A stretch of DNA of 62,988 nt, filler included, from Olpidium bornovanus S191 (Eukaryota; Fungi; Olpidiomycota), in assembly GCA_017911155.1 (NCBI GenBank). It is 34 parts of 34 records of this genome, joined end to end, with 100 filler letters (N's around TTAATTAATTAA, not from the genome) between each part and the next. Parts side by side here need not be neighbours in the genome. Positions count along the whole stretch, not along the records: positions 24,415 to 26,385 come from JAEFCI010004977.1; 33 more parts are not named here. One strand, written 5' to 3'. Shown here one piece after another: positions 1,176-26,603 of the stretch (its first letter is position 1; the number at the start of each line of letters is the position of its first letter). Made by a program: the position numbers and the translations under genes. Below the pieces are notes generated by a model. It was given only the letters and a program-made list of their open reading frames with translations. It ran no database searches and was not told where the DNA came from.

Positions 1176-4100
1176 ATGGGGTGCCGGGTTGGGAGGTGTC
1201 CCTGCGGGAAGGGGGGACGCGCGGCTCCGGCGGGTGGCGGGGGTGAGGGGGTGAGGAGGGACGAGGGGTACGCGGCCGGAGGCGCCCAGGACAACACACC
1301 GAATCCCCTGCGGAGCCCGGACGCCCAGAAGACACTCCGGAAGAACCAACCCGGTCTCTGCCCGGAAGAGCGGCGGCGTATCAGCGGAGCACTTCTGGCC
1401 GCGCGGGGGTGTGCGCGCGCGGGGGGCCTTTGGTTGTCCTGTGCAGGCGTGCCAAGGAAAAATCGAACTGCCAGGGCGGCGTACGATGGCGGCCAGGGCG
1501 ACCGCGCCGTCGGACCCGGAGATCGGAAAGTCGACCGTCGAAGGGACATGCCTCCCGCTGACCGCTGCAAATCTCAGGGCGCACAGCCGGCGGCTCGAGG
1601 GCGCCACCACACCGGTTCAGGACCTGGCGGGGAGGGTTGCCTCGTTTGCCAGGAGCCAGGCGGAGAATTTAAAGCGTCGAGCGTCGGCTGCCTTTCCCCC
1701 GCACGACGGGGGCGAGAATTGCGGACAAGATTTTGGCGCATTCGATCGTGAAGATCGACTTCGCACCGCGGAAAGCGCTGCCGTGTCGGCCGATCACGAC
1801 GATGCTCCGCTCCAGGTACGGCGCGGAAGGAGGAAAAGGCAGGTCGCGCTTCGCGGAGACGAGGGAAGCGTTTCAGTCCAACAGGCCGGCAGGAATACTA
1901 AAGAAACGCGCGGAGTTGAAAACGCCGTCGACGAACAACGTCGAATCCAAAAGAAGCCGCGCGTCGTAGAATCTTTACGGCCCAAAGAGCGCACGTGAGT
2001 ACTTTGGGTACATAATATAACCTGCGACGTTTTGCGGGGAAAAAGATATGACACGGTATTTAAATGCATGCTGCCGTTCCGTTCTTCGTCCCTGCAGCAA
2101 AGTGGACGGCCCAGAGGCGAGACGGAAACTCCAATTGAATGCAAGGGAACGTCCGCGGGGATGCTCGCGGAAAACGAAACAAGGTAAGACAGCCTGCAGT
2201 TCTTGTTATAAAGCAGATTCTCTACGGTGGTATGTTCCTGACGTGCGCCAATGTAATCGACACACTTCCTTAAGATTCGGCTAATAGTGCACTAAATGCG
2301 CATCAATCTGCGCCTCCGGCACTTACGGCAGCCGTTGAAGAGCGGGACGTGGTGCAAAACAATCAGCGGGAATTGCCAAAAACGAAGTCTACTAGGATGA
2401 ACTCCAAATTAGCTCGGGTAAGCTAACTGCAACTACTTAATTTGCAATCATGTTCTCACGGCTAACGTCCCTGGAGTTCGCCAGAAATTCGATCCACCAA
2501 ACATCATCAAGTCACGTAGAATCACGGTATTGTAGTAATCGAACGTGGGAAGCTGTGTGCAGTCGCGCCAACCGCTAATGCCGCCGAAAAAATGTCCAGT
2601 TGAAACCTACGGTGATCGAGAAGAACAGCGGTATGTTTCAGCACGGAAAGGCTTCTCGAAAGGTCGTGTCAAAAGGCGGTGAGCAAACAGTAAAGAATCC
2701 TTTGGGGGGGCTGTTTGAATTTCATTTTTAAATGCGGCCATTTGTTTTACGTCCTTACGAACGCCGCACGCGCTTTTCTTATCTCGCGACGGTCGACAGT
2801 CCCGGACCTGACATTTTCCGAGGACGCATTCCTTAATCGGCGGAGTCCGTTGGTTGTCAAGAGTGCGAAAGTCCCGTCAGCCACGAAAGAAGATGTTGCA
2901 TGTGGCTCCTGTCGGACTTCAGATCGCACTCCCGCGTGTTCTTGGTCGTCTTCCCTGCTCCAAACCAAGCCGCGGAAGGACTCGGACGGGAGCTCTACGT
3001 CGTTGGCCCGTAGTCCCATCGTAGTCATAGACACACGAAAGCGCATTGCGAGTAGGCTAAGACCTGCCGCGGCCAAAACCGCGTCAACAACAGCCGCTGT
3101 CCACTCGACCGGGAAGATCTCCTCCTTTTTTCCGCCGCCGGAGCAACCCACGATAAGGTCTGCCTGCGGCGAGGGAAAAGGCTCGTCCTCCCCTGCCGAA
3201 TCTGGCGTCTCTGGCGACCATGCGCCAACGCCCATCCGGAGAGCCACAATGGACTGTCAAATGCGCCAGGATGGAAATCGGCGTAGGCCACGCCATGGAG
3301 ATCACCAACTTGGCCGTATATCCGACAAATTGTCTGCAGTTGAGTCTTGACATCAAGGCAACGTTTTTGATCCAGAAACCTCGATTCCCGGCTAACCTCG
3401 ATTATGCCCTGCGAAAGGCTGGAGAAGTAGACTCGGAAGATCCGAAGGACCCTCAGCTCGGAGCTACATACAACGGAAAGCCACCGGGCGACGATGCCGT
3501 TGACCGGATGGGGCCTGCTTCGGGTAATCCGGTGGAATGGGAGCTTTGGTCTCCGAGGGGCTCAAACACGGTTGACAGCGATGAGTCGATCCCGCAGCCG
3601 GACGTGGAGCACGACCATCTTCTCCGCGACTTGGAGGATTACCTGCATCTAAGAAACGCGCCAGATTCACGTCGTGCCCGAGGAAAATCTGGGCCGCAGG
3701 ACGCGACCCGCGCGCTACCGCCGCAGCTCGCGGTGGGTCCCAGGCTGCCTTTCGCGTCCTTTTTAAGCGAAAGGGCGCGAAAAGCGAACGACGGCTTTCC
3801 CAACCCGTCTTTCGCAGGCGGAGCGTCGGAAAACTTTACACAGGAGATTGGATCGTTCGGCGACGCGTACCACGATTTTGAGGAACCGGCGGGGCTCGCG
3901 CGGCGGGATTCGGAGGTCGAGGACCATCGGCCGTGGAACGAGAATTCAGGCGGATTACTGCGCGACCGCGGCGAGAACGTCTACGGCGGACAGGCTTTTA
4001 CCGGCGAGCCGGTCGCGGCCCCTGGCCCGGAAAAGCCGGCGACAGGCTGGGCGTCTATTCCCTGCGCTCCCGTTTTCGGCGCGGCGGTTATGGATTCTCG

Positions 4101-7899: not shown

Positions 7900-8870
7900 G
7901 TCCTTCCTTCCGGTGAGAAAGTCGGGTCCGAAGCAATCCAAGATGTTAACCACGAAGGGGCCACTGGCATAGCGGGCGCGGCATCTGAAAGGCCAGATGG
8001 AGTGTACGCCAATTTTCAGTAATTTTTTCCAGAGCTTGCACGCCAGGTGGCATAGAGCTCTTTGCAGGTCTTTTACTCACTTGCCGGTAAGGGCTGCCGC
8101 CCGGGGCCTGCTTTCAGGGAGTCCCAGGTTAGGGCGACCGACTTCCTGGTGAGATGGAACCAAAGGGTCGAAATTTCTCTCCAGATCTCGGCCGCGGTCG
8201 AGCATTCAAAAAAGAGATGGCGGGGATCTTCCGTGCCAAAACCGCATATACACGGGAGGAATAAACCGTCCTGGACACGTGGGATTAGGCGTTGGATCAG
8301 GAAAATCCACTTTTGTCTGTTGACAGCGGACATCTAAGCGGGGGCGCCACAGCCACTCGAATGTACGCGCAATTGGGACGGTTTCTTTTTTTGTCAGAGC
8401 CTCGATGGGGGGTAACAGAGACCCTGCGGTCTCTCTTCAGCAATCAGGCGTGAGCCCATCGAACAGTCATCGACTGTGCGGGGGTCGTTCCGATGCTTAG
8501 TGCCGTTGCCCACGAGGAAACTGACCCATCCGGGCCGGGCCTCGGGTACAATGCACGAACTGCCGAAGGGCACTTATCTTGTAAGACCGTGAGGTATTGG
8601 CATAGGCCCCTGGCAAGGCGAGTACGTTTGTTATCTTGGGCGATCTGTCTGCACCCCGCACCGGCGGCCCGTACGGCGGCGGGAAGGCCGCCCAAGGTGT
8701 GCACTCCGAGGAGTGATAGGACGCGTGGCCCGTACGCGTTCCAGCGGCCTCGAGGGGCGGGGGGAACGGCCAGGTTGCCCCAAAGAGGGATTTGGTCTAC
8801 TAGGCACTGTGCAAGGGGCGGTCCCGCACGCTGATGGGGAACGTTTCCCGCACCAGGTGAATCCACTGGG
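7900..8870 (-). mobile_element. Degenerate non-LTR retrotransposon (L1/Tx1-like) ORF2 3' region with zf-RVT domain
   Basis: Minus strand, across frameshifts: FEWLWRPRL...KWIFLIQRLIPR, CICGFGTEDPRHLFFECSTAAEIW (zf-RVT C-x-C...E-HLFFEC...IW), then LWKKLLKIGVHSIWPFRCRARY (IW-x-x-R-C/N motif). Confidence 0.7.
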
Positions 8871-24414: not shown

Positions 24415-24662
24415 CATGACGGTGATGTTGGGGTTGACCAGCGTGTGGGTGGGGAAAATGCTGGCGTCGGCCACGCGCAGGCCTTCGACCCCGCCGGCGA
24501 CCCTGAGGTGGGGATCGACGACAGCGAGCCTGTCGCTAGACGGGTTTCCCATCTTGCAAGTGCCGGCTTTAAAGGAGGTGGGCGCAGTGGGGGCACGGAA
24601 GTGGGGGTGGAGAGAGGTCAACGGCAGAAACGTCAGGTGGAAACTGTTTCGGCACACCCCCC

Positions 24663-24704
<42 letters not shown>

Positions 24705-26384
24705 CGGGCGGCTGGGCGGGGCGAAACAGGCGCACCTCCTGGCCGGGACTAGTAACCTACCGGGATGGTATACGGTGTTAGAAGTTCTGCGGACGTATTC
24801 GCTGATCGCGCGGTCGGATCGGCAGTCGGGTCCCGGGGCGAGCTCGCGGCTGATCCACTTGCTTAGGGGTTCCAGCCGGGCGATCTCGCGGCCAAGCTTT
24901 ATGCCGTCGATCAAGACCGCTTCGTCGTGGCCCTCGGGGTCCGTGAAGTACCTGAAGTCGATGACGACCGGGTCCGCGGGGTCGGCCGAGCGCAGCCGAA
25001 GAGTGCCCTCACTTTTCGGCTTGGTGACGTTCGGCGTCATGCAGATGCCGCGGCCGACGGGCGGCCGCGGGTAGCCTCCGGGCGTGGTGTGCATGTCGAA
25101 GGCCTCGAGGCCGAAATGGAGCATCAGGTCCGGATACCGGGAGGTGTTCTGCGTGTTGGCGAAGAGCGCCGCCTCGTATTTTTGCCGGACGTTCGCCGGC
25201 ACGGGCCTGGTGGTCTCCCAGCTGATAACGCCCTCCGGGTGGTCGATGAGGTGGTTGCCCACGCCGGGGAGGTCGACCCTGCAGTCGATGCCGACCTCGC
25301 GCAAGTGCCACCTGGGCCCGATGCCGGACAGCATGAGCAGCTTGGGCGAATCGAACGCTCCGCACGAGACGACGACCTCCTCCCTGGCTTCGAAGACTCC
25401 GCGGTCGCTGTCGACTCCGCGCGCGCGTTTATTCCCGTCCAGCAGGATCTCCGTCACATTCACGCCGCACCGCACCGTCAGGTTCTCCGGCAGCTCCTTC
25501 AGTGGGTGCAGGTACCCGTACGAAGACGACGCCCGCCACTCGCCGTCGCAGTTGACCTGCAGGTAGCCCACGCAATCGTTGAACGAGCGCTGGTACCGGG
25601 GGGTGTTAAACTCCACGAGCGGGAAGCCGGCGTTGATTCCGGACTGGACGAACGCGCGGTTCAGCGCGTTGTCGTTCTCCACGACCGGCGTAATCTTGAT
25701 CTTCTCGCGGACTCGGTCAAAGTACTTGCGCGTCGTTTCGGCCTCCCACGAGATGCAGCCCAGCGACGCCCACCTGCGGCGGGCAAGGCAGTTAGGGGCG
25801 GCGAGGCCTTCGATGAAACAGCGGCGTGCTAAAAGTGGTCCCGCCGATCCGTACTCATTCATGTCCGAATCCGGGGCGACGAACGCGATGCACGAGTTGT
25901 GCGACGAGCAACCTCCCAAGCACTTTGCCCTTGAGTGAACCACGGCCGAGTTACCTGCGACCGCGGCGGGCTGAAGTGAGGCGCGAGCCGCCGGGCGAAA
26001 ATCAAACTCTCCCCTTTTGTCGGGAAAGCCGGTTCGGAGACCGCCTTCCGCCTCAGCCCCGCCGGAAATGTCCACACTCACCGCGCGGCTGGTGAGCGAT
26101 CTGGTACGCGTAGTCAAACTCGGTGAACAGGAGTTCCGACCAGCGGCTCAAACGCATTATCTGGTCGTTGCCCTCGTCCACGGGACCAGCCTCGAGCAGG
26201 CACACGGTGGCGGTCGGGTCCTCCGCAATGCGGCGGGCCACAGCGCCTGGGGCCGCACCGAAGGAAGGAGCGTCAGGCGCCGCCCCGGCCCGCCCCTGCC
26301 CCCGGGCCGGGATGCCGCAGCGGTTGCTTACTTACATCCGGCGGATCCGCCGCCGACGACGATATAGTCAAACGTGTGCTCCAT
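24415..26384 (-). CDS. codA: GMC oxidoreductase, choline oxidase (CodA)-type, about 5 exons, lacking only the extreme C-terminus
   Basis: [33 protein letters not shown] (His for covalent FAD), [56 protein letters not shown] introns, e.g. aatga|gtacgg...ccgcag|gtgg. Confidence 0.88.
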
Positions 26385-26603
26385 GNNNNNNNNNNNNNNN
26401 NNNNNNNNNNNNNNNNNNNNNNNNNNNNNTTAATTAATTAANNNNNNNNNNNNNNNNNNNNNNNNNNNNNNNNNNNNNNNNNNNNAACCCAACTGCAGCT
26501 GACTTACACTCTCACCTCCGGATTTTGGGATGTCGATTGTATTACCATCTTCTGAAAGACGAGCGATCATCAAAACTGGGAGATACTGCAGCCGTAAGAT
26601 ATC

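Follow-up and report, generated by a model that had tools for sequence, protein, structure and literature searches.

Positions 24415–26385 of the window, by which is meant the whole stretch of DNA analysed here (62,988 nucleotides, filler included, joined from 34 parts of 34 records of the Olpidium bornovanus S191 assembly GCA_017911155.1), carry a gene for a flavoenzyme of the glucose-methanol-choline (GMC) oxidoreductase superfamily. It is likely that this is an expressed nuclear gene of the bacterial choline oxidase (CodA) type, derived from one bacterial transfer into eukaryotes and domesticated as a probably peroxisomal choline oxidase. The piece of the window concerned, from record JAEFCI010004977.1, comprises 1,971 bases with a G+C content of 66% and holds no second gene.

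Gene structure and expression

The gene lies on the minus strand at 24415–26384 and comprises five exons and four introns, with 493 codons up to the edge of the piece. The exon model was built from the three-frame translation together with GT..AG boundaries. The ATG (26384–26382, minus strand) is located one base inside the end of the piece, and the reading stops at the opposite edge with VNPNITVM. Judged by the collinear 517-residue orthologue P0002, ~24 C-terminal codons and the stop codon are absent from the piece.

Three sequencing runs (X1–X3) each yielded one contig of 1,658–1,710 nt that aligns with the window in five blocks and skips segments of 194, 81, 127 and 89 nt, exactly as modelled. 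Read on the plus strand, the skipped segments have CT..AC ends, equivalent to GT..AG on the strand of the gene, and the contigs overshoot the piece by ~94 nt past the ATG end and by ~136 nt past the other end. A form devoid of four canonical introns is hard to explain otherwise than as mRNA. Soil-metagenome DNA contigs (X4, 90–97% identity) span introns 2 and 3 and extend into intron 4, therefore the introns are present in the DNA of an independent sample. P0002, an uninterrupted protein that is 77% identical, is collinear with the Olpidium model over all four junctions. The Olpidium choline oxidase gene is expressed and its introns are true spliceosomal introns. An earlier reading of this DNA, made from the sequence alone and termed here the original prediction, had described a near-complete GMC gene with spliceosomal introns at this place; the Pfam domains (below), the shortfall of ~24 codons and the skipping of all four introns in X1–X3 bear that description out.

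Exon 1 (26336–26384; this and all following features are on the minus strand) contains the ATG and the GxGxxG motif that binds flavin adenine dinucleotide (FAD; VVGGGSAG), and ends one base into the Cys17 codon, in phase 1. Intron 1 (26247–26335; 89 nt, GTAAGT..CAG) is skipped in the X1–X3 contigs. Exon 2 (26082–26246) encodes the remainder of the FAD-binding fold, including Trp52 (26140–26142), the equivalent of CodA Trp61. Intron 2 (25955–26081; 127 nt, GTGAGT..CAG) is skipped in X1–X3, kept in a soil DNA contig and translated in the public protein model P0001. Exon 3 (25855–25954) provides His90 (25899–25901) and Ser92, the equivalents of CodA His99 and Ser101. Intron 3 (25774–25854; 81 nt, GTACGG..CAG), skipped in X1–X3, is in frame and free of stop codons, which accounts for its retention in P0001. 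Exon 4 (24761–25773; 1013 nt, 337 full codons) encodes the substrate-binding domain with the NTVYHP motif, and its His283, Glu285, Tyr304, His324 and Val439-Tyr440-His441 correspond to CodA His310, Glu312, Trp331, His351 and Val464-Tyr465-His466, respectively. Intron 4 (24567–24760; 194 nt, GTAGGT..AAG), also skipped in X1–X3, holds a 40-nt homopolymer. Exon 5 (24415–24566), cut by the edge after VNPNITVM, provides His483 and Asn487, the equivalents of CodA His506 and Asn510. The five motifs quoted in the original prediction are all found in this model, in exon 3, exon 4 (NTVYHP among them) and exon 5 (VNPNITVM).

The homopolymer of intron 4 occupies 24664–24703 and is poly-C on the plus strand and poly-G on the strand of the gene. 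Reads and contigs break there, and a soil-metagenome contig is ~40 letters shorter across it, so the homopolymer is either variable in length among strains or a weak point of the assembly. The X1–X3 contigs differ from the window by only three single bases, at 25119, 25370 and 25554. DNA related to the Olpidium gene is contained in soil metagenomes of two other studies (X4, X7, X8), and close relatives of the organism appear to occur in soils.

The public annotation of the same contig (P0001, 'MAG: glucose-methanol-choline oxidoreductase, partial [Olpidium bornovanus]', 523 residues; MAG, metagenome-assembled genome) starts inside intron 1, translates intron 2 and retains the in-frame intron 3. 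It is devoid of the segment holding NTVYHPAGTCK, with its catalytic histidine, and a second segment of 22 letters is replaced by the translated intron 2. P0001 is mis-spliced and the corrected model is backed by the transcript contigs; residue or family analyses built on P0001 would mislead.

The Olpidium assembly goes back to non-axenic zoospores, from whose 187-Mb metagenome it was separated by tetranucleotide binning (PMC7865070). A contig of just 1,971 nt with a single gene, binned in this way, might be a mis-binned piece of another eukaryote present in the zoospore preparation. Such an origin is very improbable. The closest named relative is the fungus Calcarisporiella, which places the gene at the position expected for Olpidium with a support of 100/100, and the same introns occur in related DNA from the soil metagenomes of other studies. 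Bacterial contamination was also considered and was rejected on account of the four spliced introns.

Enzyme family and active site

The exons were queried singly in the sequence searches. Pfam identifies GMC_oxred_N (PF00732, 3e-24) and GMC_oxred_C (PF05199, 1e-10 and 1.5e-15), all above the gathering scores. The first match of exon 4 in the Protein Data Bank (PDB) is Arthrobacter CodA (accession number 2jbv; 7.5e-76, 259 bits), the next GMC enzyme (8b7s) scores 104 bits, and the oxygen-dependent choline dehydrogenase 9lq0 scores 101 bits, 158 bits under CodA. CodA also ranks first with exons 2, 3 and 5 (7.5e-10, 1.4e-8 and 1.8e-10, respectively). The NCBIfam models of the bacterial choline dehydrogenase BetA, TIGR01810 and NF002550, score 156 and 177 bits with exon 4, which represents about two thirds of the protein, compared with cut-offs of 732 and 605. 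A choline-oxidase model is absent from NCBIfam, where only BetA and MftG models match, all far under their cut-offs. Membership in the family of BetA and mitochondrial choline dehydrogenase (CHDH) was rejected based on these scores and on the position in the tree. The proposal that the enzyme is of the CodA type rather than of the BetA/CHDH type is borne out by the same comparison.

Glu312 of CodA binds the trimethylammonium head group of choline, and an aromatic cage is formed by Trp61, Trp331 and Tyr465. Alignments with PDB entries show that Trp61, His99, Ser101, His310, Glu312, His351, Val464, Tyr465, His466, His506 and Asn510 of CodA are conserved in Olpidium. The GMC catalytic pair His466/Asn510 aligns with Olpidium His441/Asn487, and the histidine of the GGCSSHNS motif, His90, aligns with CodA His99, the site of 8-alpha-N3-histidyl FAD. 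Two residues of the cage are kept (Trp52 and Tyr440), and the third, Trp331, is replaced by Tyr304 (codon 25176–25178), which is still aromatic. In CodA the FAD is covalently attached to His99 (PMC10980864), and the reference list of that paper includes studies on Glu312, Ser101 and the catalytic base.

Based on these conserved residues, from which both the substrate and the covalent flavin are predicted, the Olpidium enzyme is most likely a CodA-type choline oxidase. FAD would be bound covalently at His90, and choline would be held by Glu285 (CodA Glu312) and by the aromatic cage of Trp52, Tyr304 and Tyr440. Two FAD-mediated hydride-transfer oxidations would convert choline to betaine aldehyde and then to glycine betaine. 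His441, Asn487 and His324 (CodA His466, Asn510 and His351) would act at the flavin, with O2 being reduced to H2O2.

The tyrosine at the CodA-331 position occurs in 6 of the 7 eukaryotic members of the group described below and, among bacteria, in P0108 only. All other bacteria checked have tryptophan there, as does the rotifer Adineta, which has Phe at position 465. The replacement is possibly a marker of the donor lineage, or a subtle change of the substrate cage. It might also mark an enzyme in which the fold has been kept and the job has changed, to another amino alcohol or a primary alcohol. The concentration of the replacement in the eukaryotic members would fit such a change, as would the outcome of a literature search covering part of what is published, in which no assayed member of the compact or the eukaryotic CodA clade was found. 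A substrate other than choline is nonetheless improbable, given that Glu312 and all remaining active-site residues are conserved, that tyrosine is aromatic too, and that the Calcarisporiella gene adjoins a betaine-aldehyde dehydrogenase of the BetB type, with sister bacteria having an operon that includes one.

Residues 106–148 of the Olpidium protein (43 amino acids) replace residues 115–172 of CodA (58 amino acids), as exon 3 ends at CodA residue 113 and residue 44 of exon 4 aligns with CodA residue 173. The protein had been called slightly compact for want of a segment of CodA, and the PDB alignments do show 15 residues fewer. The short form (~495–520 residues) is, however, seen in all nearest relatives, bacteria included, so the compactness was rejected as a peculiarity of the Olpidium gene and characterises the compact clade as a whole.

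Relatives and phylogenetic position

A word search with exon 4 retrieved P0002 (77% identity) and a protein of Calcarisporiella thermophila (65%), followed by a bacterial plateau at 48–55% (Rubrobacter, Actinomycetota, Anaerolineales and Gemmataceae MAGs) within which Balamuthia mandrillaris lies at 52%. An exhaustive search of 1.84 billion representatives gave 16,095 matches at E<=1e-3, with 166 at E<=1e-30. The top matches are P0002 (625 bits) and the compact bacterial protein P0005 (391 bits), after which the scores drop steeply. P0168 of Dietzia timorensis, a 'choline oxidase' of the classical CodA type, scores 259 bits with 50% identity to exon 4. Ascomycete enzymes are represented in this analysis by cluster P0211 (Fusarium, Ilyonectria, Clonostachys), in which one protein is labelled choline oxidase; the cluster scores 161 bits with 36% identity. 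Profile searches that started from eukaryotic sequences added P0121 from a JGI metagenome and two proteins of bdelloid rotifers, P0164 of Didymodactylos carnosus and P0349 of Adineta steineri; these searches yielded no further eukaryotic sequences above the bacterial plateau. Among 5.8 billion clustered proteins, the named eukaryotes above the plateau are thereby limited to two fungi, one amoebozoan and two genera of bdelloids. The eukaryotic set has seven members: Olpidium, P0002, Calcarisporiella, Balamuthia, Didymodactylos, Adineta and P0121.

Introns and eukaryotic neighbours (Arf, ornithine decarboxylase, a RING/BRCT protein and ankyrin proteins) accompany the Calcarisporiella and Balamuthia genes and both rotifer genes. 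P0121 (locus L006, JGI sample 3300050371) is intronless; the gene next to it, at a distance of 93 nt, scores 764 bits with the CCT-theta model (cut-off 456), and since CCT-theta is a eukaryotic cytosolic chaperonin, P0121 is assigned to a eukaryote. The two L006 genes (62–1624 and 1717–3369; 46% G+C), for the choline oxidase and CCT-theta, are convergent and both intronless, which together with the 93-nt gap points to a very compact, intron-poor genome. P0002 (L001, Logan SRR31067991) is encoded in an intronless contig of 1,835 nt with a G+C content of 54%, in which the open reading frame is preceded by 149 nt and followed by 132 nt. The contig has the appearance of a transcript from another Olpidium-like fungus.

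The final tree was computed for 51 rows with IQ-TREE (LG+C20+F+G4) and rooted on the ascomycete cluster, with the bacteria thinned at 72% identity. Olpidium enters the trees as exon 4 only, and the mis-spliced P0001 was excluded from all of them. In a first tree of 119 rows, the four eukaryotes known by then were already united (Shimodaira–Hasegawa-like approximate likelihood ratio test, SH-aLRT, 95). In the final tree (Calcarisporiella,(Olpidium,P0002)) is supported at 100/100, which is consistent with a fungal host, and the seven eukaryotic sequences form one clade (94/87). The bacterial P0108 is sister to the eukaryotes (92/92), the group of P0043, P0127, P0044 and P0060 joins next (99/95), and all of these lie within a bacterial clade (98/96). 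The classical CodA of Dietzia and the ascomycete cluster fall outside the compact and eukaryotic group. The best reading of this topology is that the eukaryotic clade ultimately descends from a single bacterial compact CodA, of the type that soil bacteria carry in betB-codA operons. The donor could not be named, as the best reference-genome relatives of P0108 are Rubrobacteraceae at only 58–59% identity. In the best tree the rotifers are placed apart from the fungi, together with Balamuthia and P0121 (92/81), which hints at some eukaryote-to-eukaryote transfer.

The original prediction had left a choice between an old bacterial transfer that gained introns and a patchily retained gene, and had mentioned related enzymes of ascomycetes. 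A bacterial origin (nodes 99/95 and 98/96) and patchiness are both found; the transfer is, however, older than Olpidium, being common to scattered eukaryotes and not confined to Olpidium or to the fungi. The suggested link to the ascomycete enzymes did not hold, as the Fusarium/Ilyonectria cluster is 36% identical and branches outside CodA and compact CodA; ascomycete-type membership was rejected on these grounds, and by sequence the ascomycete choline oxidases are a separate lineage and not the source of the Olpidium gene. The gene does not group with a broadly distributed opisthokont GMC clade, an outcome that would have spoken against the original prediction.

An alternative is that Olpidium or close kin obtained the gene straight from a bacterium, independently of Balamuthia, the rotifers and perhaps Calcarisporiella, that the four introns were gained later, and that resemblance between donors, or composition, has produced the eukaryotic clade as an artefact. 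No intron is common to Olpidium and any other member, the distribution is extremely patchy, eukaryote monophyly is moderately supported and several rows deviate in composition, all of which this alternative would accommodate. It is nevertheless quite improbable, because the eukaryotic sequences form one clade in every tree built, and because the tyrosine at position 331 and the C-terminal signals described below are common to other eukaryotes. A tree in which the fungi were forced to the nearest bacterial group, the operon-bearing one, apart from the other eukaryotes, is 44 log-likelihood units worse and is rejected by the approximately unbiased (AU) test (p-AU 0.0014). Calcarisporiella, the sister of Olpidium and P0002 (100/100), also has two introns in common with Balamuthia.

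Intron positions shared among eukaryotes

The annotated exon structures were recovered by exact spliced matching and set on one alignment, and introns are denoted as (column, phase). Olpidium has introns at (39,1), (94,1), (127,2) and (486,1), Calcarisporiella at (26,0), (64,1), (381,2) and (459,0), Balamuthia at (64,1), (153,0), (286,1), (356,1) and (459,0), and Didymodactylos at (24,0) and (64,1), while the sole intron of Adineta is located at the GPSDE|GN site, in phase 1. Intron (64,1), which interrupts GPSDE|GN, is therefore common to Calcarisporiella, Balamuthia, Didymodactylos and Adineta, and intron (459,0) is common to Calcarisporiella and Balamuthia. With random placement, at least two coincidences between Calcarisporiella and Balamuthia have a probability of ~4e-5 (about 4 of 100,000 trials). 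The shared positions and phases argue for a common intron-bearing eukaryotic ancestor or donor, not for separate bacterial entries. Olpidium is tied to the clade by the tree, by its 100/100 sister relation to Calcarisporiella, by the replacement of Trp331 by Tyr and by the predicted C-terminal signal.

Following entry into a eukaryote, the gene would have acquired introns, one of which is still common to Calcarisporiella, Balamuthia and the bdelloid rotifers. Olpidium would have lost this common intron and now carries four of its own. The patchy distribution would have arisen through loss and/or eukaryote-to-eukaryote transfer.

A purely vertical history, in which the gene with the GPSDE|GN intron was present in the ancestor of Amoebozoa and Opisthokonta and was lost almost everywhere, with no transfer between eukaryotes, is also compatible with an identical intron position and phase in a fungus, an amoebozoan and two animals. 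The order within the fungal sub-tree agrees with the species tree of PMC7865070, and a tree in which the fungi and the rotifer are held together is not rejected (p-AU 0.36). We regard this history as unlikely. Very many independent losses would be required for the gene to survive in just the two named fungi, the amoebozoan and the two bdelloid genera recorded among 5.8 billion clustered proteins, and in the best tree the rotifers associate with Balamuthia and P0121 instead of the fungi (92/81). Bdelloid rotifers, moreover, are rich in foreign genes.

Predicted location and gene neighbours

The classical type 1 peroxisomal targeting signal (PTS1) has the C-terminal pattern [SAC][KRH][LM]. PTS1-like ends are found in P0002 (-AKL), Calcarisporiella (-SRL), Balamuthia (-ARL in the corrected frame) and P0121 (-ARL), that is, in 4 of 4 non-rotifer eukaryotes with a readable C-terminus, compared with 0 of 116 other proteins of the first search, nearly all of them bacterial. 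The annotated C-terminus of the Balamuthia protein P0037 is out of frame owing to mis-splicing; the homologous end, NPCLTVMLVGEKCADLIKSEPLPARL, is encoded at 8091–8225 of L005 (plus strand) and finishes with -ARL. No JGI metagenome contig exactly matched a 30-nt stretch of the 3' end of the Olpidium gene.

By analogy with these orthologues, a C-terminal PTS1 probably directs the Olpidium enzyme into peroxisomes. A peroxisomal location would let catalase remove the H2O2, and the enzyme would serve choline breakdown and/or the supply of glycine betaine. The original prediction had suggested that the enzyme could supply an osmoprotectant to zoospores; the PTS1-like ends of the orthologues point to a peroxisomal oxidase, for which choline catabolism fits at least as well. 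The rotifer genes with the GPSDE|GN intron, those of Didymodactylos (L007, 5001–7711) and Adineta (L010, 2510–4080), encode no PTS1, and the Didymodactylos protein has ~25 additional N-terminal residues that resemble an organelle presequence.

The neighbourhoods of several relatives contain an aldehyde dehydrogenase. In Calcarisporiella an intron-bearing, convergent aldehyde dehydrogenase gene (L002, 8391–10326, minus strand) lies 450 nt from the choline oxidase gene. Two clean exons of this gene pick betaine-aldehyde dehydrogenase (BADH) as the best NCBIfam family, with 202 and 176 bits. The C-terminal half of its product is 53–57% identical to the BADH of the bacterial operon L003, identities that are usual among BetB-type enzymes. 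The L003 operon has the order BADH, CodA, sodium:solute symporter, and its dehydrogenase scores 731 bits with the BADH model, above the cut-off of 593. An aldehyde dehydrogenase gene also precedes CodA in L004 and in L009, where it lies 38 nt upstream and a YceI-like gene follows CodA. P0043, P0044 and P0108 are each encoded directly downstream of an aldehyde dehydrogenase. The Rubrobacteraceae loci have a different aldehyde dehydrogenase, downstream of codA and ~34% identical to the L003 BADH.

The Calcarisporiella pair mirrors the betB-codA operons, and the arrangement may reflect co-transfer of a two-gene module, with which these sequences are compatible. A tentative extension, for which we would claim only a low probability, is that an early amorphean eukaryote living before the split of fungi and Amoebozoa, or a protist that passed the genes on, acquired a whole betB-codA operon from a soil bacterium in a single event. 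The operon would then have been split into two intron-bearing nuclear genes, the oxidase would have been re-addressed to peroxisomes, and the GPSDE|GN intron would be a relic older than the split of its carriers. If so, a compact peroxisomal module converting choline to glycine betaine survives in few lineages, with Calcarisporiella keeping both genes adjacent.

Weight of the evidence and significance

Several points weigh against the reading of an expressed, probably peroxisomal choline oxidase gene that stems from one bacterial transfer. The X1–X3 runs belong to a single study and their RNA nature was guessed by software, and the assignment of the 1,971-nt contig to Olpidium depends on the metagenome binning (PMC7865070). 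A residue of the CodA cage, Trp331, is a tyrosine in Olpidium, and the literature search mentioned above found no assayed member of the clade. Support for eukaryote monophyly is moderate (94/87, and 78/81 when Adineta is omitted). P0108, the rotifers, P0002 and Calcarisporiella are deviant in amino-acid composition, which leaves the precise sister relationships uncertain, and the group used in the AU test was picked after the tree was seen. As Olpidium has no intron of the clade, the intron evidence for common descent does not bear on it directly. The rotifer copies have no PTS1 and end with -KQE and -KQD. The C-terminus of the Olpidium protein lies beyond the piece, and its PTS1 is predicted from the orthologues only.

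The Olpidium gene adds a member to a well-known enzyme family, and its chemistry is that of the well-studied CodA. Current views are not overturned, as interdomain transfer of metabolic genes is common. The literature search, with the coverage given above, found no description of the eukaryotic CodA clade. The gene offers an example of the domestication of a bacterial oxidase, with introns gained, a peroxisomal signal apparently gained, H2O2 production placed beside catalase, and a patchy spread. The intron that rotifers have in common with a fungus and an amoeba is a character of a rare kind, able to separate a single entry followed by spread among eukaryotes from repeated bacterial entries. 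In an obligate root parasite such as Olpidium, the presence of a choline oxidase suggests the use of host choline or a supply of glycine betaine.

Comparison with known enzymes

The CodA of Arthrobacter globiformis (PDB accession numbers 2jbv, 3nne, 3ljp and 4mjw) has the same two Pfam GMC domains as the Olpidium enzyme and is ~50% identical to it over exon 4. The Olpidium gene differs in being eukaryotic, with four introns, and its protein has shorter ends (~517 compared with 546 residues) and the Trp331 to Tyr replacement. The PTS1-like C-terminus of the Olpidium orthologues is likewise absent in bacterial proteins of the CodA type.

The compact bacterial CodA proteins of Rubrobacteraceae, Ktedonobacteraceae/Chloroflexia and Gaiellales (for example, P0009 of Rubrobacter xylanophilus and the operon-borne P0043, P0044 and P0108) are closer, with 51–55% identity over exon 4. 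They belong to the same length class (~495–515 residues) and have the same deletion relative to CodA as the Olpidium protein, and the eukaryotic clade nests among them. Unlike the Olpidium gene they have no introns, nor do they have a PTS1, and Trp331 is kept in all save P0108.

BetA and mitochondrial CHDH share the GMC superfamily and the physiological substrate with the Olpidium enzyme. In contrast to them, the Olpidium protein has no N-terminal targeting sequence, its ATG being located 5 residues ahead of FDY(I/V)VVGGG.

The ascomycete choline oxidases are, like the Olpidium protein, fungal GMC enzymes annotated or shown to oxidise choline, and are paired with a betaine-aldehyde dehydrogenase. 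PMC12807369 describes A. fumigatus ChoA, an ascomycete choline oxidase, together with BADH. Unlike Olpidium, the ascomycete cluster P0211 has Ser at the position of Trp331 and Phe at that of Tyr465.

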